Program-made: the position numbers and the translations under genes
Part shown: positions 3,744 through 49,855 of the stretch, piece after piece
Layout: every line of letters starts with the position of its first letter
How positions within the stretch are numbered: position 1 is the first letter of the stretch
The notes under the pieces: model-generated
The model's input: the letters and a program-made list of their open reading frames with translations, nothing else
The model's database searches: none
Told to the model about the DNA's origin: nothing
Origin: Podarcis vaucheri
Lineage: Eukaryota
Reading direction: 5' to 3' (one strand)
Length of the DNA: 64,000 nucleotides
Assembly: GCA_965113315.1 (NCBI GenBank)
Contig: OZ220375.1

Positions 3744-4102
3744 AGAATCTAAGTAAACAGTTTATGTATTTCTTGTGCAATATGACAATGAGACGGTGGG
3801 CCTACTCAAGAAGTCAGATTTAGGTAGCATACATTCCTGACCAATCTATTTCTACTCCTATGTTACAAACAAACACAACAAATATGACAGATTCATATGG
3901 ATGGAGGGTTAAGAATATAACATGCTTGTGTGATGGCTGATTATTCTTCTGATGTATTTATCTTAATTCTAATTCATAACTTCTTAAATAATGTAGGCCA
4001 CAATCCTCATGAATAACCAAAATAAGGAACTGTATGGAACCTTGGAGATTCACTCACTACTAAATATTTTCCAAATCTGCTTAATACATAACATATAAAA
4101 CC

Positions 4103-4300
4103 TTCCTTCCAGTAGCACCTTAAAGACCAACTAAGTTAGTTCTTGGTATGAGCTTTCGTGTGCATGCACACTTCTTCAGATACCTGCATGCACACGAAAG
4201 CTCATACCAAGAACTAACTTAGTTGGTCTTTAAGGTGCTACTGGAAGGAATTTTTTTATTTTGACTATGGCAGACCAACATGGCTACCTATCTGTAACTG
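4103..4300. mobile_element. Penelope-like element fragment (inverted terminal repeat arrangement) forming a perfect 66-bp hairpin
   Basis: 4103-4168 is the exact reverse complement of 4185-4250 (16-nt loop); flanking direct repeat ATATAAAACCTT at 4093-4104 and 4302-4313; contains a hammerhead core typical of Penelope-like repeats. Confidence 0.8.
4145..4184 (-). ncRNA. Minimal type I hammerhead ribozyme motif (Penelope-associated)
   Basis: Minus strand GGUAU CUGAAGA A GUGUG-CAUG-CACAC GAAA GC UC^AUACC: stem I GGUAU/AUACC, CUGANGA and GAAA core, palindromic AGCU stem III. Confidence 0.75.
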
Positions 4301-6511: not shown

Positions 6512-7046
6512 CAAATCAGTGTCAAACTTTGGTAATAGTCTCAAACCCTTTTGTACAGCAAACCTCACTCCCAAAATATTAAGCAGGTCCCTTAGAAAGG
6601 AAGGAGGGGTACGAGTGATTCTCCCAGCTAAAACATGCTGTTTTAGCAATTGTTGTTCATACCTATGGTGGACACATGTTCCCAAATATAAATTAATCTG
6701 TACATTATTTGATTAAAAGCAGCTTATGTACCAATCTGAATTTAATTGGTGGGAGATCTGCATGAAAAAAATTCAAGAAAGTCACAGTTTTGAAAGAAAA
6801 CTGTGTTCTCTTTTGTGTAATGTTTCAGGAAGCAGAAATAATATTTTTTTATATTAAAATGCAAATTGAATTGAATTTGATGCCCATCACTAGGTGCTTC
6901 CAAATTAATACAGGGCATCAAATGAAACTCAGCAAGGACTATCAACATTAATTTTAAGTACCTATAATGTTACAGTAGGCTCTTGCATCCTAAGCCACTT
7001 GTGCTCTACACATACAAAAATACAACAGGATACATAGCAAAATCCT

Positions 7047-7948
7047 TCAATTCTTTCTCCTTATGAGTTGCTCCTTGCTATTCATCTGAGGCCTCAACAT
7101 TATGATGTAGCATTTAGGGGCAAAGATGCAACCCAATAGCCCAGCACTGGAGGACAGGATGGAGAAGATCTCCACCACTACCATATACTTCCCTTTGGTG
7201 CTCAGATAGGTTGGAACAAAGGACAACCAAACACTGCAAAACAGCAACATGCTGAATGTAATGAACTTGGCTTCATTAAAAGTATCTGGTAATTTGCGGG
7301 CTAAGAATGCCACAATGAAGCTGGCTGTAGCCAAGAGGCCCAAGTAGCCCAGGACAGAATAAAATATTGTAACGGAGCCTTCATTACATTGCACAATGAT
7401 TTCATCTGCTACAGAGTTCATGTCTAAATCAGGGAATGAGGGAGCAGTGGTCAGCCATACAGTACAAATACTTGCTTGGATAACAGTGCAGGAAAGGACA
7501 ATGGAGTTGCTCAGTTTTTTCCCCACCCACTTCCTCATCTTGGACCCTGGTTTGGTAGCCATGAAAGCTACAACCACTGTGATGGTTTTTGCCAACACAC
7601 AAGAAACAGCCATTGAGAAGACAATGCCAAAAGTTGGTTGTCGGAGGAGGCAGGTCACTGTGTTAGGTCTTCCAAGAAACAGCAATGTAGAGAGGAAGCA
7701 GAGCAGGAGGGAGATGAGCAACGTGTACGTGAGGTCCCGGTTGTTGGCTTTGACTATGGGCGTATCTCTGTGCTTAATAAAAGTTCCCAACACCCAGGCT
7801 GAGATCAGGGAAAAGAAAACAGCAATCACGGCTGAACTTATCCCTAAAAGCTCTTGGTAAGATAGAAAGGTTATTGTCTTAGGGATGCAGTCACTTCTGT
7901 CTTTGCTTGCATGCTCTTGCTCTGGGCATCTGAAACAGTCATCAATAT
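7047..7948 (-). CDS. V2R gene B exon 6 (7TM)
   Basis: tctcag|ATATTGATGAC; [34 protein letters not shown]. Confidence 0.95.
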
Positions 7949-10900
7949 CTGAGAACAAACATGGAAAGAGATAGAACTTTATGATCAAATTCTTGCTAAT
8001 TGCAAATGAGCTGATAGTTATATATATATATATATGCCACTCAACATTAAGTCAATTCTATATTTGCTTCTAGTTGCTTAGTTTTTCTTGGGTCATAAGA
8101 TCGTGCTTGATGCAATGGAGCTTACTGCCTAATTTGAATATACATATTAGACTGCCGCTTAATTGAAAGTCCTCTTGAGCAATCCTGGAAGGCATAAACT
8201 TATTTACACACTATTCTTATTTACCACTTGTAAATTGCCAATCATTTGACCCTTTATAATGGGGAAAGGGAGGTAACAAATCACTTACCAATCTGGTTTG
8301 AAACCTTCCCTTCTGGACATGGAATACAATCATAGCAGCAAAATTGTTCTCCTTCCTTTGCTTTCTTCTGATAACCAGGCTGGCAGTGTTCATTACACAC
8401 AGAAAGGGGAGGCGCCTGCTCTTAAACAGGAAAGGATTGCACAGGGAGTTTTTATTTTATTTTTACATTCTGCAAGTGCTAATCATCAAATTAAACAACA
8501 ACAACAAAATTTGTTTAAAAACAGCAGCAAAAATTTTCTCCTTCCTTCCTTTTCTTCCGATATCCTAGGTGGCAGTGCTCATTGCACACAGAAAGGCAAG
8601 CAGCTACCTTTACAGAGGAAAGAAATTGTGATGTGTGCTTTTGTTTTTGCATCATGAAAGTGACAATCATCTTTCTTTTTTTAAAGGCCAATCAATCAGC
8701 CCCATAACTTTCTACCCAGCCACACCATTGCTTCTTCTATTGCACTGTTGTTCACATCAACTAGCAGTCTAGTTCATTTGCATTCAAAGCACGGGCAGTT
8801 TCACAGACATGCAGCACAACTATGCAATGAAAGGGAATGCTTGGAATCCAATCGGCACATCCAGCTGTGAAGCCACTTCCCTCACTCTCCATCACCAAGA
8901 ATGTCTAGATTCCATACCTTGTTAAAGCTTGTGTGCCAATCAATTAGATCTTCATTGATCATGAATCCGTTTTCTTCAGGAGCTCTAGGATCTTCCACCC
9001 TTCCAACTTTCACACGAAGGAAGGAATCGTTTGGAAACATGATCATGTTCATTATGTCAAATCCACCGCTCCTTTCCCCTTGTTCATTAAAGAACACTGT
9101 CTCTCCGGCTGAGTTGTTAAAAGAAATGTCTTGAAGATATGAGTGCATCTAGTTGAAAGAGAAGAACATAAAAAGAGACCAGAAACTAATGGAGTTTGTT
9201 TTGCAGGAGATATATGTTACTGGATACACAAATGACTTAATGAACTTCTATATTCCTCCACCAGTAAGAAATGAATTATGTATTCACAAAAATACACCCT
9301 TCTTTCTGCTCACTGAAAAATGTTACCAACCCTACGTTATGTGGAATATAAAGAAGTAATAAACCTAGAACAACCATTAGGGGATTATTTTGAGCTAAAT
9401 ATGAATCACACTGAGAGCCAGTGTGGTGTAGTGGTTAAGAGTGGTAGTCTCATAATCTGGGGAACTGGGTTCGCGTCTCCGCTCCTCCACATGCAGCTGC
9501 TGGGTGACCTTGGGCCAGTCACCTATCTTTCAAGTCTCTCAGCCCCACTCACCTCACAGAGTGTTGTGGGGGAGAAAGGGAAAGGAGAATGTTAGCCGCT
9601 TTGAGACTCCTGAAGGGGAGTGAAAGGCGGGATATCAAATCCAAACTCTTGTGAATAAGGGGACAAATGCATAGATATTATGGGATGCCAGTAAGGCAGT
9701 TATGAGGGGTTTATTTATCCAGCAAAATACATACAGGAGAAAACTGATAGAACAGAAGAAGAGAGAAATTTTGGACAGCCTAATGAAAAAAAGAAAGAGA
9801 ACTAATGTGTAAACCAAATAAAGAATCCAAGAAGCAAGCAATTAAAATAGTACAAACACAATATTCAATGATTATTATGAAATAGAGTGGAAGATTAAAA
9901 GAATGAAACAAAAATATTTTGAACATGCAAATAAACCAGGGAAATTGTTAGCATGGCAAATGAATAAAAATGAGTTTAAAAACTCTGTAGATAAAATTAA
10001 ACTAAATGAAAAAAGTTATAGACAACCCAAAAGAGAATAGGAAAGTACTTGTTAAATATTACACAGTTTTATATAGAAAGGGGGACAGAGATAGACTAAT
10101 ATTTAAAGGCAAATAACCTACCAAAAATTAAAGAGGAAAATTAGTAATTTTAAATGCCCAGATATCAACTCAAGAAGTACAGTGGTACCTTGGTTTACAA
10201 CCATAATCCGTTCCAGTGGTCCGTTTGTCAACCAAAACAGGTTGTAACCCAAGGTGCGCTTTTGCCAATGGGGCCTCCCAAAAAAATTTGTCCATAATCC
10301 CCCCAAAATGGGTTGTAATCCAAAAAAAGTTTGTAAACTGGGACACACAATTCTGGGTTTGATGTGGTTGTAATCCAAAACGTATGCAAACCAGACTGTT
10401 TGCAATTAATCAGGCAAAAATAGGAAAATTGCCAGACCAGATTGACTATCAGCAAAATATTACAAAAAATTAAATAAGCAGCTTTTAGCACCATTAAATG
10501 ATATAATGAATGAAATTTTAAGATCAGGAAAAATACCAGAGAAATGGGAAGATGCATATATAACATTAATTCCAAAACAAGAGGCAGATTTGACCCAAAT
10601 AAAACATTACAGACCAATTTTGTTATTAAACGATTATAAACTATTTGCTAACATAATGGCTGATAGGATAAAAACAATATTAAAAGAATACATCATGACC
10701 AGGCAGGATTCCTTCCAGGGAGACAAATGAAAGATAATATATTATAGACGTCAGAGAATACCTGGAAGTAAGAAATGAAAAACAAGCAGCATTAATGTTT
10801 ATAGATTCCGAAAAAGCCTTTGACAATGTCTCTTGGGAATTGATGAATAAAATCCTTGAAGAAATGGATTTTGTAGAAAAATTTAGGAAAGGAATTTCTG

Positions 10901-13900
10901 CAATATATTCAGATTGAAAAGCTAAATTTATTGTGAATCAGGTGGTAACAGATAAATGTAAGATACCGAAGGAAACAATACAGGGATGTCTGTTATCACC
11001 TTTACTATTTATTCTGGTCTTAGAAGTCCTGGCGAGGAACATTAGGGCTGACAAAAATATTGGAGGAATCCTGGTAGGGAAAAAGGCTTAAAAATTGAAA
11101 GCATATGCTGATGACCTTTTAATTACAGTTGAAGACAATAAGATTTTAGAAAAAATAAAGGAATTTGAGCAAGTTGCAGGCTTCAAACTAAATAAAAATA
11201 AGACTCAGCTGTTGGCTAAAAATTTATCAGAATTAGATAAAAAAGAATTATTCCAGACTATAGAAATAGAGATTTATAAGAAGGTCAAATATTTAGGAAT
11301 TTGGCTTACAACTAAGAATATCAACCTTTATAAAGACAATTATGAAAAGTGTTGGAATGAAATAAAAAGAAATGTAAAAAATATGGGGCAGAATGAATTT
11401 ATCATTATTAGGAAGAATTACAGCTATTAAGATGAACACATTGCCAAAAATGTTGTTTTTGTTCCCGTCAATACCAGTAATAAGTAACATATCATGCTTT
11501 AAAAAATGGCAAAAGGATATCTCAAAATTTACAGTGGTACCTCGCAAGACGAATGCCTCGGAAGACGAAAACCTCGCAAGACGAAAGAGTTTTTCGTTTT
11601 TTGAGTTGCTTCGCAAGATGAATTTCCCTATGGGCTTGCTTCGCAAGACGAAAACGTCTTGCAAGTTTGTTTCCTTTTTCTTAAAACCGCTTGAAGAGGT
11701 GCAGTTGAGACTTGACCGTGCTTCACAAGATGAAAAATTCGCAAGACGAAAAAACTTGCAGAACGAATTAATTTCGTCTTGCGAGGCACCACTGTATATG
11801 GAAAGGGAAGAAACCAAGGATAAAACATAAAATACTTACAGATATTAAAGACAGAGGAGGTTTCTCCCTTCCAGACTTCAAATTATATTATGAAGCTGCT
11901 TATGTTACTTGAATCAGGGATTGGATTAAATTAGAAAACACAGATTTGTTAGATCTGTAAGGACACAATGACAGATTTGGATGGTATGTGTATCTGTGGT
12001 ATAATAAATGGAAAGTACATAAAGCATTCCATAATCATATAATTAGGAGATCACTTTTAAAAGCATGGGGAAAACATAAGGACCTTTTAGAACAAAAGAG
12101 AAGAAGAAACTTTTTATGTATGCTACAACAGTGGCTAGGATATTGCTAGCCCAAAGATGGAAGAGCGACGAAATACCAACTAAAGAACAATGGCAAGAAA
12201 AATTGATGGAATATGCTGAAATGGTGAAGCTAACTGAAAGGCAAAGACAATAGAGACTTTTAAAAAGACTGGGAATCATTTATGAGGTACCGAGAGAAAC
12301 AATGCAAAGAAAGTTTGAGTAAACGCTTACAATTAATAAACAAATATAGAAATTATAAAGATCATGTTAAAATGATAAGAGAATAATATTTGATATAATG
12401 AACTCAATATGAAGATATAATTCAGAAACAGAGGAATTAATATGTAAAAAACCAGAAGAGGAAGTTAAGGGAGGTTGAGGGGAAGAAGAGAAGAAGAGTT
12501 TGGATTTGATATCCCGCCTTTCACTCCCCTTCAGGAGTCTCAAAGTGGCTAACATTCTCCTTTCCCTTCCTCCCCCACAACAAACACTCTGTGAGGTGAG
12601 TGGGGCTGAGAGACTTCAGAGAAGTGTGACTGGCCCAAGGTCACCCAGCAGCTGCATGTGGAGGAGCGGAGACGCGAACCCGGTTCCCCAGATTACGAGA
12701 CTACCGCTCTTAACCACTACACCACACTGGCTCTCAAGGGGAGAGGGATCTGGGGAATTATATTCTTTTGTTATCTGATATGTTGTTATTATTATGATGA
12801 TAAAAAACTCTATATTTTAACAAAGAAAAAAGAAAAAGGATGATGTATCCACAAAAATACACCCTTCTTTCAGCTCACTGAAAAATTCAACCAACCCTAA
12901 ATACTATTGGGTGTACAGAAGTAATAAACCTAGAACAACCATTCCTACCTACCGGTAATATTGTTTAGATAGTATACAAAAATACAGAAATATAAGATAT
13001 TTTAATATGGCAGGTGAAAATTTATGAGACAGTAACAGGTAAAATTCTTTTCAGTCTCAGTAATGGGAGGAATGCAGAATCCCAAAGCCATCATGAAATA
13101 AGATGCTTAACAGCGGTTACTAATAGATGCTTAATAGTGGTTACCGAAGGATGGATTGAGCCAAACTAATGGGAAGAATACAATCCACACACAGTACCTG
13201 CCAAGGCTGCACTTCTGGAAGTTCGAACCTTTTTCTGCTCACCATTGCTCTGTAGTTGGATCGATATGAGTACATGATATGAAGAGCATGGGCCACCACA
13301 TAGACAGCATTATAGATACTGTAGCTGTGGGCAGTCATGCGCATTTCAAAGAGTGGATCAGGAAGGCTCTCCAGAGTCTCTTCCCCAGTGCAGGGTCCAC
13401 TGTATATTAATGAGAAATTGCCATTTGGAAGGTTACAGTCAAATGCTTTCTCCCAGAAGCACGTGAGAAATCCATCTCTCAAGCAACTATTAGGTTTTCT
13501 ACTCTGAAGAAAATCATTGAACCCCAGAGGATCATTTGAGTGAACTGTGAAGCAAATGGCACCATTGAAATATTGAAGGTCCCAAACCCTTTGAAAGTCT
13601 AATAATATGAAATCAATCTCAGATGTCATAATCCACACTTTTCTAATTGATCTAAGTCCAAAACCTTCAGGATCTTGCATGAATATAACAGTTGTCAGCC
13701 ATGCGATTACCACAGTTTCTCCGTACATTAGAAATGTACTGACTGTATTATCAATGAATGGTGCAGACAATCTCCAGTACGTCTTATAAAGTTCAGGAAT
13801 ACTATCTGAATGAAATTCTTCTGGGATTCTCTCTATGAAAGCCGAACAAATTTCATTCTGTCTAAGCAAGATTTCCATGTCATGCAAGAAAGATTCTCCA

Positions 13901-19338: not shown

Positions 19339-21725
19339 CTGAATGCCCCCTGTCCCCACAAAACAGTACTTCTGTCTTGTCAGGATTCCACCTTAATCTG
19401 TTAACTGCCATCCATCCTCCAACTGCCCCCAGACACTCACAGAAGATCTTCACCGCCTTCACTGGTTGTGATTTAAAAGAGAGGTAGATCTGGGTATCAT
19501 CTGCATACTGATGAACACCGGCCCAAAAACCCTGATGATCTCTCCCGGGGGCTTCATATAGATGTTAAAAAGCATGGGGAAGAGGACGGAACCCTGAGGC
19601 ACCCCACAAGTGAGAATCCAAGGGTCTGAACACTCATCCCCCAACACCACTTTTAGACACGTACCAGGAGGAATGAGCGGAACCACTGTATAACAGTGTC
19701 CCCAGTTCCCTGCTCCTCCAGACGGTCCAGAAGGATGTCATGGTCAATGGCATCAAAAGCCACTGAGAGATCCAGTAAAACTAGGAAACAGCTTTCACCT
19801 TTGTCCCGAGCCCACCAGAGATCATCTACCAGTATGACCAAGGTAGTTTCAGTCCCATGATGAGGCCTGAATCCCGACTGAAAGGAATCCAAATGGCCCT
19901 CATCCTCCAGGCATGCCTGGAGTTGTTCAGCAACCCCCTCTTGATCTGTTGATGGACAGCTGCCCTGACTCAGCCCTGAACACACGGACACAATGCTTGG
20001 TAGCTGTGGCTGGATGGCTGCTTGGGAGCTGGTTGAAGTTAAATCCTTCAAAGACAAAGGTCCTCTGGCTGGGTTGGGACGACTTGGGGTTGGGGGGCCA
20101 ACTCCTATCTCTTGCGGGGCTCAGTTAGTGCCAGCGCCTTCTGTCAAGAGTTTGGGTAAAACTTTGATGCCTCCCTTTCTATGGTTGTGCAGGCTGTAGC
20201 CACAGCAAAGGTGGCATTTTTCCATCTCCGCCATATTAAGCAGTTGGTCCCTTACCTTTCTCGCCCTGATCTGGCCACAGTGATCCATGTGACAGTCACC
20301 TCCAGGCTTGATTATTGTAACTCGCTCTATGCGGGGCTGCCCTTGAAGCTGACCCAGAAACTCCAGCAGGTGCAGAATGCCGTGGTGAGGCTCCTTACGG
20401 AGTCCTTGGATCACATTCATCCAGTGCTTTACCATCTGCACTGCCTCCCAGTGGAGTGCAGGGTCAGGTTTAAGGTTCTGGTTTTGACCTTTAAAACCCT
20501 ATGTGACCTAGGACCCTCGTACCTACAGGACCGCCTCTCCTGATATGCCCCGTGGAGGACCTTTAGGTCCATAAATAACACTTTGGAGGTCCCAAGCCTC
20601 AAGGAGGTTAGATTAGTTTCAACTAGGGCCAGGGCCTCTGTCACAAAAGACTAAGGCCCTGTGGGTTTGACATCTTTCCGCAGGGCCTGCAAGATAGAAC
20701 TGTTCCGCCTGGCCTTCGGCTTAGTCTCACTCTGACCCCTTATATGGGATTTGGTATAAAAATTTTCCCTTGGCTTTTTTGCTGGCCCATTTAGGACCAG
20801 CATGGATGGCTCGGGTGAATATCTGATGTTTCCTCCCTTTATGGTCTTGATTTATGGGCTACTACTAAAATGAGGCTGCATTTTAAGCTGTATTTTAAGC
20901 CGTATTTTAATTAACTGTTTGTGTGTTTGTTGTTTGTTTGTTTGTTTGTTTGTTTGTTTTTCCTATTACATATTATTGTAATTCATATTTGGTGTTAGCT
21001 GTCCTGAGCCCAGCCCTGGCTGGGGAGGACAGGATTTAAATAAAAATGTATTATTAATTTATTATTTATTATTAATCACCTTGCCCAAGAATAGAAGATT
21101 TGAGACTGGGCGATAGTTGGCCATATTGACTGGATCAAAAGATGTTTTTTAAAGAAGCGGTTTAAAAACCGCCTCTTTCAGTGGGTCTGGGAAAGCTCCT
21201 TCACAGAGAGAAGCATTCACCACCCCTCAGAGCCCATCACCCAGCCCTTCCCTGCTCGCTTTTATGAGCCAGGATGGGCAAGGATCAAGGAGACAGGTAG
21301 TTGGTTTCACTTGTCCAAGCCGTATGTCCACATCCTTGGAGGTAACAGATTGGAACTGACCCCATGCAAATTGACAAGACAGGACTCTAGCACTCTCCTG
21401 CCCTGGCCCTGCTCCCATTGTGGAGTCTACCTCTTTCTGAATCCGAGCAACTTTATCTGCAAAAAAGTTTGCAAAATCAATGCAGGGAATCTTGGGGTCC
21501 TTAGCAGGCCCTGATGATGAAGGTTAGATTGTGAACCACCTGAAAGAGTCTCCTGCTGCTGTTTTCTGCAGATGCAATAGAGACAGTGAAGAAAGTCCTC
21601 TTTGCTGTTGCTATCACCACTTGGTAGGCTCGATGTTGAGCTCTAACCAGTGTCTGGTCCGATTCAGAATGAGTTTTCCACCACTAGAGCTCTAGTCGTC
21701 TCAACAATTGTTTCATCAGCCTCAG
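19339..21725 (-). mobile_element. L2-type LINE ORF2 fragment split by a nested L2 (pieces ~19339-19944 and ~21076-21725)
   Basis: PTTCLLDPCPSWL..NYRPVSNL..GKVI / EQLQ..QSGFRPHHGTET..LLDLSVAFDAIDH..GVPQGSVL..NPDKTEVL are colinear across the insertion. Confidence 0.85.
19945..21075 (+). mobile_element. L2-type LINE 3' end nested in the opposite-strand L2
   Basis: WLKLNPSKTKVL..TSRLDYCNSLYAGLP..LQQVQNA..FKVLVLTFK; 3' UTR with (TTTG)n and (TTA)n tail. Confidence 0.85.
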
Positions 21726-22237
21726 CTTTAGGGGCTGTATGCAGTTGCAACAAATAGCACATTAACATCCACACAAAGAATAGGTATGGTGAGGAACGTA
21801 TGACTGATCTGCTCCTGAAGATTCGTCAATATTAACTGTTTATTTATCCTATGGCATCCATTTTTGCACACATATTCCCGTGTGTGTGTGTGTGTGTGAA
21901 ATACATTATTTGATCTAATGCAGTTTGTGTACAAAACTGAAAATTAATCAGTGGCAAATCTGCATGAAAAAAATTCAAGAAAGTCACAATTTTGAAAAAT
22001 TAAACGGTGTTTTGTGTAATGTTTCAGGAAGCACAAATTATATTTTTTTTCTATAAATGCAAATTGAATTGAATTTCCTGCGCATCATTAGCTACTTCCA
22101 AATGAATTTAGGCCATCAAATGAAACTAAGCAGGGACGCTACACATTATGTAGAATAATATTACAGAAGGCTTTTGCATCCTAAGCCACTTGCACTCTAC
22201 ACATACAAGAATACAACAGGATACACAGCAAAATCCT

Positions 22238-23139
22238 TCAATTCTTTCTCCTTGTGAGTTGCTCCCTGCTATTCATCTGAGGCCTCAGCATTATAATGTA
22301 GAATTTAGGGGCAAAGATGCAGCCCAATAAGCCAGCACTGGAAGACAGGATGGAGAAGATCTCCACCACCACCATGTACTTCCCTTTGGTGCTCAGATAG
22401 GTTGGAACAAAGGACAACCAAACACTGCAAAACAGCAACATGCTGAATGTAATGAACTTGGCTTCATTAAAAGTATCTGGTAATTTACGGGCTAAGAATG
22501 CCACAATGAAGCTGGCTGTAGCCAAGAGGCCCAAGTAGCCCAGGACAGTGTAAAACATTGCAACGCAGCCTTCATTACATTGCACAATGATTTCCTCTGC
22601 TACAGAGTTCATGTCTAAATCAGGGAATGAGGGAGCAGTGGTCAGCCATACAATACAAACACTTGCTTGGATAACAGTGCAGGAAAGGACAATGGAGTTG
22701 CTTAGTTTTTTCCCCACCCACTTCCTCATCTTGGACCCTGGTTTGGTAGCCATGAAAGCTACAACCACTGTGATGGTTTTCGCCAACACACAAGAAACAG
22801 CCATTGAGAAGACAATGCCAAAAGTTGGTTGTCGGAGGAGGCAGGTCACTGTGTTAGGTCTTCCAAGAAACAGCAACGTAGAGAGGAAGGAGAGCAGGAG
22901 GGAGATGAGCAGCGTGTACGTGAGGTCCCGGTTGTTGGCTTTGACTATGGGAGTATCTCTGTGCCAAATAAAAATTCCCAACACCCCGGCTGAGATCAGG
23001 GAAAAGGAAAGAGCAATCACGGCTGAACTTATCCCTAAAAGCTCTTGGTAAGATAGAAAGGTTATTGTCTTAGGTATGCATTCACTTCTGTCTTTGCTTG
23101 TATGCTCTTCCTCTGGGCATCTGAAACAGTCATCAATAT
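22238..23139 (-). CDS. V2R gene C exon 6 (7TM)
   Basis: tttcag|AT; 902 nt open to TGA. Confidence 0.95.
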
Positions 23140-26100
23140 CTGAAAGAAACATGGAAAGAGATAGAATTTGATGATCAAATTCTTGCTAATTGCAAATGAG
23201 TTGGTGGTTATATAAAAATTGCACTCAACATTAAGCCAATTCTTCATTTGCTTCTAGTTGCTTAGTTTATCTTGGGTCATTAGATCATGCTTGACGCAAT
23301 GGAGCTTGATGGGAAGTTTTCCTTCTGCACCTGAGTCTGGCAAACCACTCTAAGCTGAAACATTCCTTCCTAGAATGTTTAGTTCACATTGAGTTCATGG
23401 AACATTGTACCCTGACCTGTTCTTAATGCATGGTTGACCACATCTATGGAATGCGATGGTCATGCTCTTTTAAGTCTTACTATATCACTCAATAAAAAAA
23501 TTCCTTCCTGTAGCACCTTAAAGACCAACTAAGTTAGTTCTTGGTATAAGCTTTCGTGTGCATGCACACTTCTTCAGATACACTCAATAGTTATAGTTTA
23601 AGTCTTGCTATATCAATCACTAGTAATTGTTTAATATGAGGTCTTCACGCCTGTCCAATTCTGTGTTCCCTTTCCCAACCTTTAATCTATTGATGATTAA
23701 TGCCTATATGCAACCCTTGCATTGTATTTGTGTTAACCAATCAGCAACAAGCACATATGTGCCAATGCTGTAATATTCAATAAAAGGGAATCCCCAAGAC
23801 ATGCTCGAGAAATGCCTCCCATATGACACTTGTCACTCGTCTGTCGTTTATTTCAACCCAACAGGAGCTTACTGCCTAATTTGAATATACATATTAGACT
23901 GCCGCTTAATTGAAAGTCCTCTTGAGCAATACTGGAAGGCAGAAACCTATTTACACACTGTTCTTATTCACCACTTCTAAGTTGCCAATCATTTGATCCC
24001 TGTATAAAGGGGAAATAAGGTAACAAATCACCAATCTGGTTTGAAACCTTCCCTTCTGGACATGGAATACAATCATAGCAGCAAAATTGTTCTCCTTCCT
24101 TCGTTTTCTTCTGATAACCAGGCTGGCAGTGTTCATTACACAGAGAAAGGGGAGGCACCTGCTCTTAAACAGGAAAGGATTGCACTGGGAGTTTTTATTT
24201 TATTTTTACATTCTGCAAGTGCTAATCATCAGATTAAACAACAACAACAAAATTTGTTTAACAACAGCAGCAAAATTTTTCTCCTTCCTTCCTTTTCTTC
24301 TGATATCCTAGGTGGCAGTGCCCATTGCACACAGAAAGGCAAGCAACTAACTTTACAGAGGAAAGAAATTGTGATTGTGTGTTTTTATTTTTATTTTTGC
24401 ATCATGGAAGTGTCAATCATCTTTCATTCTTTTTTTAAAGGCCAATCAATCGGCCCCATAACTTTCCCCTGGAATGATGCTTTCTACCCAGCCACACCAT
24501 TGCTTCTTCTATTGCACTGTTGTTCACATCAACTAGCAGTCTAGTTCATTTGCATTCAAAGCATGGGCAGTTTCAAAGACATGCAGCAAAACTATGCAAT
24601 GAAAGAGAATGCTTGGAATACAATTGATACATCCAGCTGTGAAGCCACTTCCCTCACCCTCTATCCCCAGTAATGTGTAGATTCCACACCTTGTTAAAGC
24701 TCCTCTGCCAAACAATTAGATCTTCATTGATCATGAATCCATTTTCTTCAGGAGCTCTAGGATCTTCCACCCTTCCAACTTTCACAGGAAGGAAGGAATT
24801 GTTTGGAAACATGATCATGTTCATTATGTCAAATCCACCGCTCCTTTCCCCTTTTTCATTAAAGAACACTGTCTCTCCAGCTGAGTTGTTAAAGGAAATG
24901 TCTTGAAGATATGAGTGCATCTAGTTAAAAGAGAAGAACATAAAAAGAGACCAGAAACTAATGGAGCTTCTTTTGCAGGAGATATTTGTTACTGGGTACC
25001 CAAAGGACTGGATGAACTCCACCAGTAAGAAAAAGGACGATGTATTCACAAAAATACACCCTTCTTTCAGATCACTGGAAAATTTAACCAACCCTAAATT
25101 ATGTGGAATATAAAGAAGTAATAAAAGTAGAACAACCATTCCTACCTGATATTGTTTAGATAGTATCATCTGAGAAATGCAGAATATAAAAAGTGTGATA
25201 TTACATTATGGCAGGTGGAAAATTCATGAGACAGTAGCAGGTAAGATTCTTTTAAGTTTCAATAACAGGAGAAATGAAGAATCCACAAACCAACATCGGA
25301 TACCATGCTTAGCAGTCGTTACTAATAGATGCTTAATACTGGTTACCAATGGATGGATTGAATCAAACAAACTGAAAGAATACAGTTCACACACATTACC
25401 TGCCAAGGCTGCACTTCTGGAAGTTCAAACCTTTCTCTGCTCATCATTGATCTATAGTTGGATCGATATGAGTACATGACGTGAAGAGCATGGGCCACCA
25501 CATAGACAGCATTATAGATACTGTAGCTGTGGGCAGTCATGCGCATTTCAAACTGAGGCCCAGGAAGCCTTTCCAGAGTCTCTTCCCCAGTGCAGGTTTC
25601 ATGGCCTTCTATTGAGACATGGGATTTTGGAAGTTGACAGTCAAATGCTTTCTCCCAGAAGTCCATGAGAAATCCATCTCTCAAGCAACAATAAGGTTTT
25701 CTACTCTGAAGATATTCCTTGAACCCCAGAGGATCATTTGAGTGAATTGTGAAGCAAATGGCACCTTCAAAATGTTGAAGGTCCCAACCCCTTTGAAAGT
25801 CAAATAATATGAAATCAATCTCAGATGTCATAATCCACACTTTTCTAATTGATCTAAGTCCATCATTTGCAGGATCTCGCATAAATATAACAGTTCTCAG
25901 CCATGCGATTGCCAAAGATTCTCCATAGATTATAAATGTACTGACTGTATTATATGTGAATGCTGCATACAATCTCAAGTACGTCTCATACATTTCATCA
26001 ATACTATCTGAATGAGGTTCTTGTGGGATTCTCTCTGTGAAAGCTGCACAAATTCCATTCTGTCTAAGCAATGTCTCTATGTCATGCAAGAAAGATTCTC

Positions 26101-28000
26101 CACTGTTTCCATCATCTGCAAAGAGCCCAACCCACGTCCATCCAAAATGTTTAAGCAGTCTGATAATCCCTGTGTACTGAAGAGCTGAGTTGGGAACCAT
26201 GCAGTAAAAGGAACGGATAAGAATTGTGAGACTTTTCTCTGGAGGAAATGAGCCATAGATGACCTGGAAGAAATTTTGAAATACTGTAGAACTAGTTTTA
26301 GATTATATTTTTGTTTATATAGGTCTTCTGATTCAACAAATATTCTTTGAAGCAATCAATTGATATTATGAGAGTTGAATCCAAGTTATGGTAATATTAT
26401 ACACTTTCTGTGAGTTCTCATCCATCAAACTTTTTAATTATTATTAAGGAGCAGTCATGTATTGAAATTACAAGTACTTAATGGGGTTAGGGTTTCTTGG
26501 CACAAGCACCTGCCTATAACTCTGATTCACTTCAGGAATTTGAATTGTGATTTCCACATGGAGTGCACCTCTGCTGGGTTAGAATCCATGCCTAATCTTT
26601 TGTCATATCCATTCCATGTTTTGAAACACAAAATTACTTTTAAAATGGCAAGAGTAAAAAGGGTGGGCCAATGAGGGAATCCCAAAGCCGCATTGGTAGA
26701 CCTTACCTGTGGAATCTTGTAGTGGCCTGTGATCTCAGCCATTTGGAAAGAGGTATCAGCCCCCAATCCCCCAATGATGCTTAGGAGATTTTTTTGGCTG
26801 TCACATTTGTAGTTGGGGACAAACTTAGAGGATTTGAAAAGGAGTTCAAGAGTGCTATGGTAGGTCATCTTTGCATTGTAGTAGCTGTCATAGATATGGA
26901 ACCCGAGTGTGACATTCGTCAAGATCCTGGGATTCTCATTTATCTCTTTCACAGCAAATGCCAATGCAAGAACATGCTGATAGAACTTTGTCACCATACT
27001 GAAAGAAGAGCCCATTTTTAATTTCAGAGGAGGATTCTACAATGCATTAAATATGCTAATGTTGATAGTGGTCATTTCTTCCTCCGACTCATTTAGATTG
27101 TAATAAAACTATATTATTTTTTTGTCAGGTTTCTGAGGCAATTTAAACCTCCCTCTTCAGCTCAAATATAATTCAGGAAACCTAAAGGGATAGTTTTGAA
27201 ACACCACTTGTTTGTCCTTTGAGCTTTCCCATAAAGCAGAAAACAACAAAACATAGCTTTCAATTTTCTGCTTCCTGCCAAAATGTGTATAGTATTGACA
27301 TTTTTGTACAAAACGTATCAGAAATTTTGGTGCAGATGCTGATTAATTTTTATGAGTACTAATAAAAAAGCAGATTGATGTGCAAATTGGGGGAAACTAA
27401 TATTAAGACTCAAAAAATGAGAAACTTGGAGAATATGAATTGGACACATTTGCCAATGTCTATTATGAACCCAACATGGAGGTCTGAGTTCAGTTTTTCT
27501 AGGTTACAAACATGTAAAATTCAGCACACTGCAAAATATTTCCCACCACAACATCTTTGCACTAATACTTATCCATTTTTAATTTTTTTTAATAACTGTT
27601 CTTAGTTCCTCAACACAGACCCACCCAAATCCAAACTTCTATTAATAAAATTTTAAAACGCCTTTGCCCTGAATTGTGGCTCCCCTTTGTTATATTGATT
27701 ACTCCTGTGCTTTCTAGTGATTCATTGCATTGTTCTTTGTGAACCACACAAGGCAAGAAGATATAGACAGGGAAATGATGCTTACTATGCTGTGTCAAAG
27801 ACCTGCTGTGATGGCTGTTCTTTGAAGGAGACTTCATAGAGAGAGTAAATGATATGCGAAGCAATCCCACCAATGTGAAGGTCACCTGGCTCATACCATT
27901 CATGTAGAACAGGGAGGGAATCAGTCATTGGGCATTTCATAGTGTCTGCTTTGCCCACTACTGGAAGCAACAAAAGCAGCATCAGAAAGAACCGCAGCAT
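22238..28000 (-). CDS. V2R gene C, intact reading frame, 876 aa: complement(join(27786..28000,26707..26998,25400..26263,24690..24920,24032..24158,22238..23139))
   Basis: Exon sizes 215/292/864/231/127/902, GT-AG, phases compatible; exon 5 donor weakened to GTGATT. Confidence 0.9.
23495..23580 (-). mobile_element. Penelope-like fragment nested in the LTR
   Basis: Near-identical to 4103-4183; 9-bp flanking repeat CACTCAATA (23486-94, 23581-89). Confidence 0.8.
23544..23581 (-). ncRNA. Minimal hammerhead ribozyme motif, sense to gene C pre-mRNA
   Basis: GUAU CUGAAGA A GUGUG-CAUG-CACAC GAAA GC UU^AUAC; palindromic AAGCUU stem III. Confidence 0.72.
24032..24158 (-). CDS. V2R gene C exon 5 (Cys-rich)
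   Basis: gagcag|[43 protein letters not shown]|gtgatt; 127 nt. Confidence 0.9.
24266..24346 (-). pseudogene. Truncated, frameshifted duplicate of exon 5 (D-type) in gene C intron 4
   Basis: Same 81-nt remnant and same 1-nt deletion as 8523-8603. Confidence 0.88.
24690..24920 (-). CDS. V2R gene C exon 4
   Basis: aactag|MHSYLQD..SFNK|gtgtgg; 231 nt. Confidence 0.93.
25400..26263 (-). CDS. V2R gene C exon 3
   Basis: ttccag|[12 protein letters not shown]|gtaatg; 864 nt. Confidence 0.95.
26707..26998 (-). CDS. V2R gene C exon 2
   Basis: tttcag|[14 protein letters not shown]|gtaagg; 292 nt. Confidence 0.94.
27786..28000 (-). CDS. V2R gene C exon 1
   Basis: [21 protein letters not shown]|gtaagc; 215 nt. 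Confidence 0.9.
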
Positions 28001-28390: not shown

Positions 28391-29873
28391 GAGGCAGCTC
28401 TCTTCACTGGCACTCTTGGAAGCAAACATGTTATTTCTTTGCTTGAGGTCTGACCACAGCAATTCTCTGTTGTTGTTTTTAGGAGCACACACAGTGGCAG
28501 ATTTGTTACAGTAGGGATATGGAGAATGTGGTTGTGCTCATGATCTCTTTGTGGGCTTGTTAAGGCCATCTGGTTGGGCACTCCTAGAACAGAATGCTAG
28601 GTGGGATGGTCCTTTGCCTTGATTCTGACCTTGACATTATGTCCTTTTCCACTGATGTTTCCTGGACAATTATAAGGTGGGAAGGTGCTGTGTGATAGGC
28701 CTTGCCCATATTGCTCTGACCTGAGAGATCCCTCGCACTGTCTTTTTTGCCATGACTCCATCCTCTAGAAGTCCAGGTTCTCTACTGTTAAGCTAATATT
28801 CTAACTCATTCTCATTTCTGCAACCTCACCCCCCCTTACTCTACTAATTCAGCCATGGATTGCAGCTGAGAAACAAAGCACTGGGTGGAGGTGGGTTGAT
28901 GGAGAGAGAGGTGAATACCATGAAAAGAGATATAAACCTGATGCTCTTCAGTTGATTAGATATTGCAGCTCAGTAATGGGAAATTGTCATTTCTCATCAA
29001 CTGATGTAGAGGTGTGTGTGTGTAGGGAGTCATGCTTAATGGAGTATATAAACCCCATGCTGTTGCACTGAATGAAGCCTGAAGATTAGCACTGATGCAG
29101 CTCACTACATTTCCACTCTGTGTAATAAGGAGGGCTTGTGGATTATGCATATACAATGCTAGGTGTCTAGGTCCCATAAATTTACTAATTTATGGAGTTA
29201 GTAAGGTTGGTATTAATCAAGGTTTGAGTACAACTGTGACAAACACTGCTGGATTAAGTTTAGGATAACTAGTTTGATTTAGCTGGTTGGTATAAGGCAT
29301 TAAGAAACAAAGAATGAAATTGCCAGTCATTAGCCTATCAGTAGAAGCCATCAACCATGCAGGTGTCTTCCTAGCACAGAAGAAAAGGCCTATCTGCCCA
29401 GATTAAGATTGCTCAGGGCAACCAGCCGTTGTACAGCTCTGTAGAAGGAAGCAAAAGATGGTTCAGGTAATGTCCCAGCAACTCTCCCGAAATCTCTCTC
29501 ACACCACCAAGGTCCCTGGGAGATCACGTTTGGGGGCTGTGCACAGCTTTAATTTGGAGGGTTACAGCTTCTCCATCTCCAGATCAAGGGTTTGACATGG
29601 ACAGCTCTATTTTGCTTTCCTAGCTGGGAAATGAATACTGTGGCAGTGGGCAGCCAGGTATGATCAAGAACCACAAACTATTCTCATCTGCTTAAGATAT
29701 CCGCACCAAAGGGTGAAAATGTAGTGAGGTGCTTCACTACTGATCTTCAGAATTCATTCTGTGCAACAGCATCAGGTATATAATCTCCACATGCACACAT
29801 ACCTCAGTTCATGAGAAATGACCATTTCCCATAGCTGAGCTGCAGTATCTAATCAACTGAGGAGCACCAGGTT

Positions 29874-30350
29874 AAACTGTACTGGCTACCAAGTCATTTC
29901 TGGACCCAGTTCTAAGTGCTGGTTTTGACTTATAAAGCCTTAAAAGGCTCTGGACTGCGATACCGCAAGGACCGCCTCTTCCCATATGAACCTGTCCAGA
30001 CTCTGAGATCATCTTCTGAGGCCCTTCTTTGTGTGCTGCCTCCTGAGAGGTCTGGAGGGTGGCAACACAGGAATGGGCATTCTCTGCTGTGGCCCCCATC
30101 TGTGAAATGCTTTCCCTAGGGAAGTTTGCCTGGCGCCTTCATTATACAATTTTAGGCGCCAGACAAAAAGGCCTTTGGTTGACCTTATTGACATCCAACA
30201 CCCTTTTAGAATATGGTCCTTTGGGGTGGGAGTTATTGTGTTATTCTTTTTGGTTTGATTTTATATGTTGTGGTCTTGTTTGTGAACCACCCTGAGACCC
30301 CCAGCTATAGGGCTATGTATAAATTGAATAAATAATAATTATAATAATAC
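29874..30350 (+). mobile_element. L2-type LINE 3' fragment between C and D
   Basis: VLVLTYKALKG..FSAVAP; (AAT)n tail; interrupts the D-side homology to C upstream sequence. Confidence 0.75.
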
Positions 30351-30801
30351 ATTTATCCTTACTGTGATCATCTCTCTCTCCACCCCAGCCCCACCCAATG
30401 CTTTGTTTCTGAGCTGCAATCCATGACTATATTAGTAGACGGAGGGTAATGTTGCAGAGAGGAGACTGGGTTAGAATATTAGTTTAGCAACAGAGAACCT
30501 GGACTTCTAGAGGATGGAGTCATGGCAAAAAAGACAGTGCCAGGGATCTCTAAGGCCAGAACAAGGACAAGGTCAGAATCAAGGACCATCCCATCTAGAC
30601 TTCTTTTCTAGGAGTGCCCAACCTGATGGCCCTGAGAAGCTCACAAAGAGATCATGAGCACAACCACATTCTCCATATCCCTACTGTGACAAATTTGCCA
30701 CTGTTTGTGCTCCTAAAAACATAGAATTATTGTGGTCAGATCTCAAGCAAGAAAACAACATGTTTGCTTCCAAGAGTGCCAGTCGAGAGCCTTAGCTCTT
30801 A

Positions 30802-31190: not shown

Positions 31191-31405
31191 ATGCTGTGTT
31201 TCTTTCTGATGCTGCTTTTGTTGCCACCCATAGTGGGCAAAGCAGACACTATGAAATGCCCAATGATTGATTCCCTCCCTGTTCTACATGAATGGTATGA
31301 GCCAGGTGACCTTCACATTGGTGGGATTGCTTCGCATATCATTTACTCTCTCTATGAAGTCTCCTTCAGAGAACAGCCATCACAGCAGGTCTTTGACACG
31401 GCATA
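31191..31405 (+). CDS. V2R gene D exon 1
   Basis: [21 protein letters not shown]|gtaagc. Confidence 0.9.
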
Positions 31406-34400
31406 GTAAGCATCCTTTCCCTGCCTATATCTTCTTGCCTTGTGTGGTTCACAAAGAACAATGCAATGAATCACCAGAAAGCACAGGAGTAATCAATCCA
31501 AACAAGGGGATCCACTATTCAGGGCAAATGTTTTTTAAAATGTTATTAATAAAAATTTGGATTTGGGTGGGTCTATGTTTGGGAAATGAGAACAGTTATG
31601 AAAATGATTTATTAAAAAATAAACACATATAAGTGCTAAAATGTTGTAGTGAGAAATGTTTTGCAGTGTGCTGAATTTTACATGTTTGTAACTGTATTGG
31701 GTTCATAATAGACATTGGCAAATGTGTCCAATTCATATTCTCCAAATTTCTCCTTTTTTGAGTCTTAATATTAGTTTTCCTCAATTTGCACATCAATTTG
31801 ATTTTTTTGATTAGTACTCATAAAAATTAATCACCATCTGCACCAGAATTTCTGATACCTTTTGCACAAAAATGTCAATATTATGCACATTTTGGCAGGA
31901 GACAGAAAGCTATGTCTTGTTGCTTTCTGCTTGGGAAAGCTCAGAGAACGAACAAGTGGTATTTAGAAACTATCCCTTTAGGTTTCCTGAAGTATATTTG
32001 AGCTGAAGAAGGAGGTTTAGATTACCTCAGAAACCTGACAATAAAATAATATAGTTTTATTACAATCTAAGTGAGTCGGAGGAAGAAATGACCACTATCG
32101 TTGCATGCACATTTAATGCATTGTAGAATTCTCCTCTGAAATTAAAAATGGGCTTTTCTTTCAGTATGGTGACAAAGTTCTATCAGCATGTCCTGGCCTT
32201 GGCATTTGCTGTGAAAGAGATAAATGAGAATCCCAGGATCTTGCCGAATGTCACACTCGGGTTCCATATCTATGACAGCTACAACAATGCAAAGATGACC
32301 TACCATAGCACTCTTGAACTCCTTTTCAAATCCTCTAAGTTTGTCCCCAACTACAAATGTGACAGCCAAAAAAATCTCCTAAGCATCATTGGGGGATTGG
32401 GGGCTGATACCTCTTTCCAAATGTCTGAGATCATAGGCCACTACAAGATTCCACAGGTAAGGTCTACCAATATGGTTCTGAGATCCCCACCCCCCACAAA
32501 TTTTACTCTTGCCATTCTAGGAGTAATTCTGTGTTTCAGAACGTGGAAGGAATATGACAGACATTGGGCATGGATTTTAACCCTGCAGGTGTGCACTCCA
32601 TGTGGAAATTACAAGTCAAATAGTTGAAGTAAATTAGAGATAGAGGCAGGTGCTTGTGCTTGAGAGCCAGTGTGGTGTAGTGGTTAAGAGCAGTAGTCTC
32701 GTAATCTGGGGAACCAGGTTCGCGTCTCCGCTCCTCCACATGCAGCTGCTGGGTGACCTTGGGCCAGTCACACTTCTTTGAAGTCTCTCAGCCCCACTCA
32801 CCTCACAGAGTGTTTGTTGTGGAGGAGGAAGGGAAAGGAGAATGTTAGCCGCTTTGAGACTCCTTCGGGTAGTGATAAAGCAGGATATCAAATCCAAACT
32901 CTTCTTCTTCTTCTTCTTCTTCTGCTTGGAGACCTGCCAAGAAACCCTAATCCCATTAAGTGCTTGTAGCTCCAATACAAGACTTCTCCTTAATAATAAT
33001 TTTAAAAGTGTGATGGATAAAAACTCACAGAAAGTGTATAATACAGTGGTACCTTGGGTTAAGAACTTAATTCGTTCTGGAGGTCCATTCTTACCCGGAA
33101 ACTGTTCATAACCTGAAGTACCACATTAGCTAATGGGGCCTCCCACTGCCACCGTGCCGCTGCTGCACGATTTGTGTTCTCATCCTGAAGCAAAGTTCTT
33201 AACCTGAGGTCCTATTTCTGGGTTGGGGGGGGGGGTTGTAACCTGAAGCGCCTGTAACTTGAAGTATCTGTAACCCGAGGTACCACTGTATTACCATAAC
33301 TTGGATTCAACTTTCATAAGATCAATTGATTGCTTCAAAGAATATTTGTTGTATCAAAAGACCTATATACACAAAAAAATAATCTAAAACTAGTTCTACA
33401 GCATTTCTTAATTTCTTCCAGCTCATCTATGGCTCATTTCCCCCAGAGAAAAGTCTCACAAGTCTTATCCGTTCCTTTTACTGCATGGTTCCCAACTCAG
33501 CTCTTCAGTACACAGGGATTATCAGACTGCTTAAACATTTTGGATGGACGTGGGTTGGGCTCTTTGCAGATGATGGAAACAGTGGAGAATCTTTCTTGCA
33601 TGACATAGAGATCTTGCTTAGACAGAATGGAATTTGTGCAGCTTTCACAGAGAGAATCCCACAAGAACCTCATTCAGATCGTATTGATGAAATGTATGAG
33701 ACGTACTTGAGATTGTATGCAGCATTCACATATAATACAGTCAGTACATTTATAATCTATGGAGAATCTTTGGCAATTGCATGGCTGAGAACTGTTATAT
33801 ACATGCGAGATCCTGCAGATCATGGACTTAGATCAATTAGAAAAGTGTGGATTATGACATCTGAGATTGATTTCATATTATTTGACTTTCAAAGGGGTTG
33901 GGACCTTCAACATTTCGAAGGTGCCATTTGCTTCACAGTTCACTCAAATGATCCTCTGGGGTTCAAGGAATATCTTCAGAGTAGAAAACCTTATTGTTGC
34001 TTGAGAGATGGATTTTTCATGGACTTCTGGGAGAAAGCATTTGACTGTAAACTTCCAAAATCCCATGTCTCAATAGAAGGCCGTGAAACCTGCACTGGGG
34101 AAGAGACTCTGGAAAGGCTTCCTGGGCCTCAGTTTGAAATGCGCATGACCGCCCACAGCTACAGTATCTATAATGCTGTCTATGTGGTGGCCCATGCTCT
34201 TCACGTCTTGTACTCATATCGATCCAACTATAGATCAATGATGAGCAGAGAAAGGTTTGAACTTCCAGAAGTGCAGCCTTGGCAGGTAATGTGTGTGAAC
34301 TGTATTCTTTCAGTTTGTTTGATTCAATCCATCCATCGGTAACCAGTATTAAGCATCTATTAGTAACGACTGCTAAGCATCTTGTTTGATGATGGTTTGT

Positions 34401-38056: not shown

Positions 38057-38345
38057 GAAGAAGAAGAAGAAGAAGAAGAAGAAGAAGAAGAAGAGGAGGA
38101 GGAGGAGGAGGAGTTTGGATTTGATATCCTGCTTTATCACTACCCTAAGGAGTCTCAAAGTGGCTAACATTCTCCTTTCCCTTCCTCCCCCACAACAAAC
38201 ACTCTGTGAGGTGAGTGGGGCTGAGAGACTTCAAAGAAGTGTGACTAGCCCAAGGTCACCCAGCAGCTGCATGTGGAGGAGCAGAGACGCGAACCCGGTT
38301 CCCCAGATTACGAGTCTACCTCTCTTAACCACTACACCACACTGG
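38057..38345 (-). mobile_element. tRNA-derived SINE (Squam3-like) with expanded (CTC)n(CTT)n tail
   Basis: Reverse complement of the family; (GAA)n(GAG)n at ~38057-38113. Confidence 0.87.
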
Positions 38346-40058: not shown

Positions 40059-40285
40059 ATGGATGGGATGATGCTGTGGTTCTTTCTGATGCTGCTTTTG
40101 TTGCCTCAAATAGTGGGCAAAATTGATAATACGAATGGCCCAATGCCTGAATCCCTCCCTGTTCTGCATGAATGGTACGAGACTGGTGACCTAGTTATCG
40201 GTGGGATTGCGTCACATATCATTTACTTTTTCGATGATGTTTCCTTCAAAGAAAAGCCATCACAGAAGCTCTTTGACATTCCATA
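40059..40285 (+). CDS. V2R gene E exon 1
   Basis: [26 protein letters not shown]|gtaagg. Confidence 0.88.
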
Positions 40286-49395: not shown

Positions 49396-49702
49396 AGGAT
49401 TTTACTGTGTATCCCATTGTATCCTGTATGTGTAAAGCTCAAGTGGCTTAGGATGCAAGAGCCTACTGTAACATTATATATATTTAATGTTGAGAGTCCC
49501 TGCTTAGTTTCATTTGGTGCCCTAAATTCATTTGAAGCAACTAGTGATGGGCAGCAAATTCAATTAAATTTGCATTTTAATATTTTTTTAAAAAAAATCA
49601 TGCTTCCTGAAACATTACACAAAACAGAACACAGTTTTCTTTCCAAATTGTGTCTTTCTTGTTTTTTTCCATGCAGCTCTCGCAGCAATTAATTTGCCGA
49701 TT

Positions 49703-49855
49703 GGTACCACTCCGGTGGTAAGGTAAACAGCATTTCCGTGTGCTGCTCTGGTTCGCCAGAAGCGGCTTAGTGATGATGGGCACATGACCCGGAAGCTGTC
49801 TGTGGAAAAACGCCGGCTCCTCGGCCTGTAGAGCTGAGATGAGAACCCACCACAG
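49703..49855 (+). mobile_element. Sauria SINE internal fragment
   Basis: ggtaccac..aggtaaacagc..ttccgtgtgctg..cgccaga..tgacccggaag matches 44779-44920. Confidence 0.75.

Follow-up and report, generated by a model that had tools for sequence, protein, structure and literature searches.

The window analysed here is a 64-kb stretch of Podarcis vaucheri contig OZ220375.1, which carries a tandem array of six class-C G protein-coupled receptor (GPCR) paralogs. We keep the letters A to F given to these genes by the initial annotation. Gene A is partial and lies on the plus strand, B (about 16280 to 7047) and C (about 28000 to 22238) are on the minus strand, and D (31191 to 37275), E (40059 to 49395) and F (about 50700 to 59874) are again on the plus strand. 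Runs of N occupy 1557-1725 and 56596-56795; exon 5 of F enters the second run, so that this exon is readable only up to the gap. In B, C, D and E, all of exons 1-6 were located, all are open and all have canonical GT-AG splice borders, those of exons 4-6 being confirmed by RNA contigs as well. Domain and database searches were run exon by exon rather than on a joined spliced protein. In these four genes, the Pfam domain ANF_receptor corresponds to exon 3 (and weakly to exon 4), NCD3G to exon 5 and 7tm_3 to exon 6, for which the nearest solved structure is the calcium-sensing receptor (CaSR, E = 4e-82). The best-named relatives are "vomeronasal type-2 receptor 26-like" proteins of Podarcis raffonei (96%) and P. 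muralis (93%), and all 120 matches listed are squamate proteins named either "vomeronasal type-2 receptor 26-like" or "116-like", not CaSR, mGluR or TAS1R, the names being automatic annotations. Judged by their domain architecture (Venus-flytrap ligand-binding region, nine-cysteine domain and class C 7TM), closest named relatives and six-exon tandem array, which all fit, the genes are vomeronasal type-2 receptors (V2Rs), a family of pheromone receptors.

Genes B and C each contain a truncated copy of exon 5 (hereafter the stub), whose 81 nt correspond to nucleotides 1-82 of that exon, followed by the exon 5 in use. In B, read in the direction of transcription, exon 4 (8918-9148, 231 nt) is succeeded by intron 4 (8604-8917), which ends in the kept acceptor of the stub (polypyrimidine tract and AG), the stub itself (8523-8603) and a 16-nt stretch (GTTTTTAAACAAATTT, 8507-8522) that may be junction filler or a degenerate microsatellite. 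Then comes a second intron-4 end, from (TTG)4 TTTAAT to the acceptor in use (8416-8506), and the used 127-nt exon 5 (8289-8415), which encodes the Cys-rich NCD3G domain. The arrangement in C is the same: an 81-nt stub (24266-24346), the 16-nt filler with the second intron-4 end (24159-24265) and the used exon 5 (24032-24158), with the distance of 107 nt between stub and used exon identical in both genes. Genes D and E have a single exon 5 each. In D (exon 5 at 35919-36045), the homologue of the stub is 35919-36000 (82 nt) and that of the breakpoint follows 36000. In E, the intron-4 end with a (TTG)n run (47628-47736) is homologous to 8506-8416 of B, and exon 5 (47737-47863) comes nearest to the copies in use in B and C.

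The stub is dead as an exon. Both copies have the same 1-nt deletion (TTGCTT-GCC versus TTGCTTCCCC in D), which brings a TAG into the exon-5 frame, and no plausible donor site follows the stub in either B or C. Across the junction, B and C read ...TTTTGCTGCT, then GTT(T/G)TTAAACAAATTT, then (TTG)4 TTTAAT(T/C)TGATGATTAGCACTTGC; here the sequence matches the end of intron 4 in E (47632-47736) and not D. Exon-5 position 82 is joined to intron-4 position about -107, whereby about 150-190 nt are duplicated, and the homologues of the breakpoint in D and E are separated by 11.6 kb. Microhomology at the junction is short (2-5 nt; GCTGCT / CTGCT...TTG), with TTGCTGCT|ATGATTG in D versus GACTGCT|CATGGTTG in E, directly before the repeat. 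The initial annotation had described truncated D-like copies at these positions in B and C, a 1-nt deletion common to both, an abrupt switch to the (TTG)n-containing end of E intron 4 and a microhomology-like join. Each of these was recovered on re-analysis, the join showing a few bases of microhomology plus the filler. A contig from a public DNA run (X1 record 5, 8459-8588) crosses the junction of B with no differences, and the same junction occurs in two genes that have diverged by 8% within the stub itself. The junction in B and C is real and well beyond chance. As B and C have the same non-homologous junction, the join is older than the B/C duplication.

The stub and the used exon 5 differ in their affinities. 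In BLAST comparisons within the window, the stub with its upstream intron matched D at 84% (1e-51) and E at 78%, while the used exon 5 with its flanks matched E at 89% (1e-121) and D at 77%. Diagnostic sites were defined as positions where D and E differ in the unit of about 150 nt shared by the stub and the used copy. The D state is held at 21 of these sites in the B stub (2 E-type, 5 neither) and at 23 in the C stub (3 E-type, 4 neither), and the used copies of both genes are E-type at 25 sites, D-type at three and neither at two. Six exon-5 sites at which D is unlike E and the B/C sequence score as changes on the D line when outgroup A is consulted. Identity amounts to 88-89% between stub and D and to 94-95% between used copy and E, both far closer than D and E are to each other in their introns. 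In the maximum-likelihood tree of the unit rooted on A and F, the two stubs group with D (72/77) and the two used copies with E (86/90). Two other topologies were rejected by the approximately unbiased (AU) test, namely stub and used copy as one clade, as an internal duplication in B/C would give (p = 7e-8), and D and E as one clade (p = 4e-6).

For the remaining parts of the genes, the four-gene MAFFT alignment misaligned the stub region, and the unit, intron 5, exon 6 and the untranslated region (UTR) were re-aligned separately. Unrooted four-taxon trees cannot tell ((X,D),E) from ((X,E),D), where X denotes sites at which B and C agree. Three-way site patterns, distances, rooting on A and F (which align only in exons 5 and 6) and a breakpoint test were used instead. 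From the 5' flank through intron 4, X agreed with D at 509 sites and with E at 89, and D agreed with E at 34; within intron 4 of B the counts were 68 for D and 9 for E. Jukes-Cantor (JC) distances between X and D were 0.05-0.15 over the part upstream of the junction and 0.08-0.16 in its introns, where either of them is 0.36-0.49 from E. On this evidence, the 5' flank, exons 1-4 (including the 231-nt exon 4 of B), introns 1-4 and the stub of B and C are assigned to the D lineage. Past the junction, the pattern is reversed: over exon 5 and the 72 nt of intron 4 directly before it, X=E at 27 sites, X=D at three and D=E at one, the second intron-4 end of B contributing 15 X=E and 3 X=D sites. A maximum chi-square scan over 767 informative sites placed the best single breakpoint at B 8485/8482, that is, at the stub junction, with D:E counts of 567:95 upstream and 32:73 downstream; none of 2000 permutations was as extreme. 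Such discordance of affinity across the junction is what the initial annotation had named as the test of its chimera, and the D-like upstream part that it described is borne out.

Further downstream, the pattern is less uniform. Intron 5 (7949-8288 in B) is of mixed or star-like affinity: its 5' part (X=E 14, D=E 11, X=D 4) is not D-like, with E equally near D and X, and its 3' part is evenly divided (X=D 11, X=E 10). Exon 6, which encodes the seven-transmembrane (7TM) domain in an open reading frame (B 7047-7948, C 22238-23139, D 36374-37275, E 48494-49395), is 95-98% identical among the four genes. Its synonymous divergence (dS) is 0.066-0.104 for every pair, far under the intron divergence of D and E, which differ by 0.4-0.5. 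Polarising exon 6 with outgroups A and F gave almost only autapomorphies of D or E and was uninformative. Exon 6 has been homogenised by gene conversion, which points to concerted evolution of the 7TM exon, and there is no "D-type" or "E-type" 7TM; only about the last 90 nt of the exon are E-type. Over the downstream part as a whole, D-like and E-like patches alternate beyond chance (runs test z = -3.29), which makes it a significant mosaic.

At the 3' end, E affinity is clear again: across the final 93 nt of exon 6 together with the 85 nt of 3' UTR that follow the stop, X=E at 14 sites and X=D at one. Homology between X and E then runs 225 nt further, to E 49707, whereas D homology ends at 37357, 85 nt past the stop, with a distance of 0.27-0.33 in the D 3' UTR before that point. 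The 3' UTR and flank of B (6728-7046) is shared with E (49396-49707) and not with D. Distances in the 3' flank are 0.115 for B-E and 0.20 for C-E, and the homology of X to E stops no more than 27 nt from that of B to C. The statement of the initial annotation that exon 5, intron 5 and the 3' UTR resemble E and not D holds for exon 5 and for the 3' UTR, and only half so for intron 5. Likewise, of the "E-type Cys-rich/7TM half" that had been postulated, the Cys-rich part stands, with seven E-type residues, while the 7TM part does not. As a separate observation on the 3' flank (6728-6962 versus 49484-49707 versus 21929-22156), B is nearer to E (0.115) than to its twin C (0.207), which hints at a further B-E exchange or at faster change in C.

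Spliced RNA contigs from three runs and two organisms (coded H and C) were compared over 6900-9400. Two contigs from organism H (X17 record 13 and X18 record 17) are B-like at C-specific sites, and one from organism C (X19 record 24) has gene-C states at 7783, 7884, 7890 and 7910. All three join exon 4 straight to the downstream exon 5, at 8415, and 8289 to 7948 (exon 6), and the stub is skipped by splicing, as had been foreseen. The reported exon 4/5 joint (8916-8413) is 2 nt off the canonical 8918|8415; a variant 8414 G>A, present in DNA run X1 and giving a GTG codon as in C and E, makes the placements equivalent. No contig over 8496-8915, the stub region, was found in the three RNA runs, assembled contigs being prone to drop rare isoforms. 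The RNA contigs differ from B by about 3% in exon 4, where E differs by about 20%, and by 4% in exon 5, where D differs by about 12%; by sequence, they are X-type transcripts.

Other Podarcis species were compared by protein models only. The NCBI model of P. raffonei (P0001) comprises exons 4, 5 and 6, and that of P. muralis (P0002) is the orthologue of C, matching it at 41/42 residues of exon 5 and 292/299 of exon 6. In both models, an X/D-type exon 4 (71-72 of 77 residues matching B, 53 of 77 matching E) is directly followed by an E-type exon 5 (40-41 of 42 residues matching E, 35-36 matching D), and both read ...SFNK|VPPLS... across the joint. B and C are thus intact, transcribed genes with correctly spliced exons 4-5-6, the joins being seen in both B-like and C-like RNA contigs.

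Some transcripts and models depart from the six-exon structure. In X19 record 25, the end of a D/C-type exon 1 (31376-31405) is joined to the start of exon 4 (9148), skipping exons 2-3; the join reads ...GCA TA|A TGC... and makes a TAA. In P. muralis P0002, exon 2 is joined straight to exon 4. Isoforms without the main Venus-flytrap exon seem to occur, to judge from these two sequences. The organism H contigs X17 and X18 reach back past the exon-4 acceptor to cover 51 nt of intron 3 (9149-9199) and then continue with 29 letters absent from the window. P. raffonei P0001 begins at the opening ATG of exon 4 as found in B and C, the corresponding codon being TTG in D and ATC in E. An alternative 5' exon, or a truncated isoform consisting of the Cys-rich domain and 7TM, may lie behind these starts.

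We propose, with a probability of roughly 70%, that X, the ancestor of B and C, originated by an out-of-register, non-homologous join of a D-lineage and an E-lineage gene and was later duplicated and blurred by conversion. The D-lineage gene would have been broken after nucleotide 82 of exon 5 and joined to the E-lineage gene at its (TTG)n run, about 90-107 nt ahead of exon 5. Such a join would have kept the D-type promoter, exons 1-4 and introns, plus the truncated D-type exon 5 as a relic, while E-type sequence would have supplied a working exon 5 and the 3' end of the gene. The relic is frame-shifted and devoid of a donor, and exon 4 splices to the downstream E-type acceptor, so that the mRNA stays in frame. 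X would then have been duplicated in tandem into B and C, and conversion among paralogs would later have homogenised exon 6 and blurred intron 5. Since the E-type anchors are clean on both sides (from the junction through exon 5, and from the end of exon 6 into the 3' flank past D/E homology), we infer that the whole 3' part was most simply E-type at birth, acquired in a single event, and blurred later. The distances of X to D in 5' noncoding sequence (0.10-0.16) and of X to E in the intron-4 end, 3' UTR and flank (0.04-0.20) are similar, which fits a single origin. B-C distances of 0.08-0.13 in most introns place the tandem duplication soon after the join.

As for the mechanism, plain homologous unequal crossover was ruled out: it is in-register and seamless and cannot leave a stub, and the junction is out of register. 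As D and E both persist, a deletion would need a prior extra copy of the D-E pair. The candidates are a deletion inside an additional, inverted copy of the pair and a template switch during replication; a switch from D to E that produced an inverted copy at the same time would account for all features at once. C is placed head-to-head with D, and their 5' flanks form inverted arms (C 28711-29122 versus D 30564-29707, 76-84% identity) around a spacer of about 585 nt. Some 495 nt are inserted in the D arm (29873-30368), and the flank of C is shared by B up to 29542. No reciprocal relics, i.e. the 3' end of a D-type exon 5, a D-type intron 5 or an E-type 5' half, were found elsewhere in the window. 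The initial annotation had invoked a deletion or unequal exchange between D-like and E-like neighbours, yielding a chimera inverted relative to D/E and then duplicated. The inverted orientation holds, as do the spacing of about 11.6 kb and the duplication after the join, given the junction common to both genes; a homologous crossover had to be abandoned, and a simple deletion does not suffice.

Several observations weigh against the origin proposed above, or against parts of it. E-type signal is clean only at 8506 to about 8200 (about 300 nt) and at 7137-6728 (about 400 nt), and exon 6 includes D-like patches (for instance 7494-7242, X=D 11 versus X=E 3). X-E distance is 0.01-0.11 in the exon-5 unit and jumps to 0.24-0.28 in intron 5, and B-C distance is likewise 0.015-0.03 in the unit as opposed to 0.13 in intron 5; part of the E-likeness of the unit may therefore stem from later conversion. 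The filler holds TTTAAACAAA, a 9/10 match to a D-type A-rich tract, which fits an internal D-type duplication. The presence of both D and E today cannot be fully explained by a simple deletion between them, and, the family being large, the true parents may lie outside the window. Lastly, the RNA evidence consists of assembled contigs, and minor use of the stub acceptor is still conceivable.

Some of these features would also be expected under a history of two or more steps, in which an internal tandem duplication of about 190 nt in a D-type gene, comprising the end of intron 4 and nucleotides 1-82 of exon 5, was followed by E-type conversion of the downstream copy and, separately, of the 3' end. 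The stub would then mark a duplication junction and not a D/E junction. Conversion is rampant in the cluster (exon 3 of C and D at JC 0.019, exon-3 windows of 98-99% identity between D or C and E, exon 6 homogenised), the exon-5 unit is much more alike between X and E and between B and C than the adjoining intron 5, and the filler resembles the D-type TTTAAAAAAA tract. However, no more than 16 nt separate the junction from the E-type tract, of which the E-specific (TTG)n insertion is a part, and there is essentially no homology upstream to prime conversion. The E-type 3' UTR and flank, moreover, reach more than 225 nt past any D/E homology, where homologous conversion could not resolve. This history also requires at least three events where one suffices, and we regard it as unlikely, although it is the most serious competitor.

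Alternatively, the two-copy state might be ancestral, with D having collapsed on the upstream copy and E on the downstream one, and B and C having kept both. The tree of the unit, ((stubs,D),(used copies,E)), taken alone, is compatible with such an old duplication. Yet an ancestral pair does not predict that the affinity of the flanks switches across the junction. D would be expected to have an X/E-type 3' UTR, which is instead unalignable beyond +85 nt and distant before it, and the 5' part of E should be X/D-type, in conflict with the distance of 0.36-0.49. Stub and D, as well as used copy and E, are far closer than the introns of D and E, outgroup A has a single copy, and F shows no second one ahead of its gap. 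We consider this alternative very improbable. Finally, an artefact of assembly or alignment (a misjoined D-type paralog read or a chance low-complexity match) might be suspected in so repetitive a family, in which the summed contig depth of the DNA run at exons 5-6 exceeds that of flanking bins tens- to hundreds-fold, but its chance is close to nil given the BLAST E-values of 1e-22 to 1e-51, the recurrence of the junction in two diverged paralogs and the DNA contig crossing it without mismatch. The depth excess in X1 relative to neighbouring bins, considered in its own right, suggests many near-identical paralogs.

A non-homologous D/E join followed by duplication can be compared with several known systems. 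Chimeric fusions of tandem paralogs have been described for haemoglobin Lepore/anti-Lepore, laurasiatherian delta/beta-globin (PMC4041002) and CYP21A1P/A2 (PMC3161346). As in X, the 5' part of these genes comes from one paralog and the 3' part from its neighbour in the array, the product is intact and expressed, and conversion followed the fusion. The globin and CYP21 fusions, however, arose by homologous unequal crossing-over with a seamless in-register junction, whereas in X the middle of exon 5 is joined to late intron 4, with a partial exon duplicate, microhomology and filler, and the two parental types both persist. Concerted evolution and gene conversion are known in V2R/OlfC and other chemoreceptor arrays, with GENECONV tracts in OlfC (PMC6588630), and have been raised as a possibility for squamate V2Rs (PMC3590772). 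The same family and the same mosaic similarity among paralogs are met here in exon 6 and parts of exon 3, but conversion swaps homologous sequence and leaves structure unchanged; by itself it does not produce a structural scar such as the stub. Deletions by non-homologous or microhomology-mediated end joining (NHEJ/MMEJ) and template switching by fork stalling and template switching or microhomology-mediated break-induced replication (FoSTeS/MMBIR) are microhomology-mediated rearrangements, and template switching yields inverted duplications. X resembles their products in its out-of-register junction with 2-5 nt of microhomology and a short filler, and in the inverted head-to-head copy with homologous 5' flank arms. 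In contrast to typical cases, a second junction could not be identified in the window, where insertions of transposable elements and later duplication have altered the flanks, and the assignment to this class is accordingly tentative.

Duplication, conversion and the exchange of domains are regarded as the routes by which chemoreceptor families diversify. Exchange is usually deduced from tree discordance alone, because homologous crossovers leave no mark. The relic in B and C pins the breakpoint to a few bases, dates the join before the B/C duplication and provides a fixed landmark against which later conversion can be read. Chimeric genes in tandem arrays are already known; our literature search turned up no V2R for which an exon relic at such a join had been described, and in this respect the case is new and unusually well marked. 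A gene can evidently tolerate a half-exon that is frame-shifted, has a good acceptor and lies 107 nt ahead of the real one. In functional terms, little has changed: compared with a pure D-type receptor, the chimera differs in seven residues of the Cys-rich domain and in the 3' UTR, the 7TM exon being alike in B, C, D and E. The predicted protein is a D-type ligand-binding domain with seven E-type Cys-rich residues. We can only speculate, and with little confidence, that the stub, whose polypyrimidine tract and AG are intact and conserved in B as well as in C, serves as a decoy 3' splice site giving a stop-containing extended exon 5 of 315 nt that tunes receptor output, and that out-of-register joins, by which a ligand-binding ectodomain is placed on the Cys-rich domain and 3' end of another paralog, are a recurrent and traceable route of V2R diversification in lacertids.

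Several other features of the cluster were recorded. The exon-3 regions of C (25098-26396) and D (33289-34584) are 96-98% identical (JC 0.019), B being 0.115 from both, and one 200-nt exon-3 window of E (43778-43978) is 98-99% identical to C or D. These tracts look like recent gene conversion in the ligand-binding exon. A repeat of about 240 nt, present as an inverted pair (9412-9650 and 12494-12736, 94% identity), flanks about 2.8 kb of AT-rich DNA within the enlarged intron 3 of B. Open reading frames between the inverted copies gave no Pfam match. Further copies lie in intron 2 of D (32659-32916) and downstream of D (38071-38345), and the repeat looks like a miniature inverted-repeat transposable element (MITE) or a transposon end. 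The 4-kb spacer between the 5' flank of B and the 3' end of C holds a degraded reverse-transcriptase fragment (RVT_1, 1.5e-08) at 19653-20057 on the minus strand. In C, the exon-5 donor has lost GTAA and kept GT, and intron 5 contains an insertion of about 560 nt (23307-23864) that is not in B, D or E. Within this insertion lies an element of about 87 nt that also occurs as a 160-nt palindrome between A and B (4097-4256; 95-97% identity).

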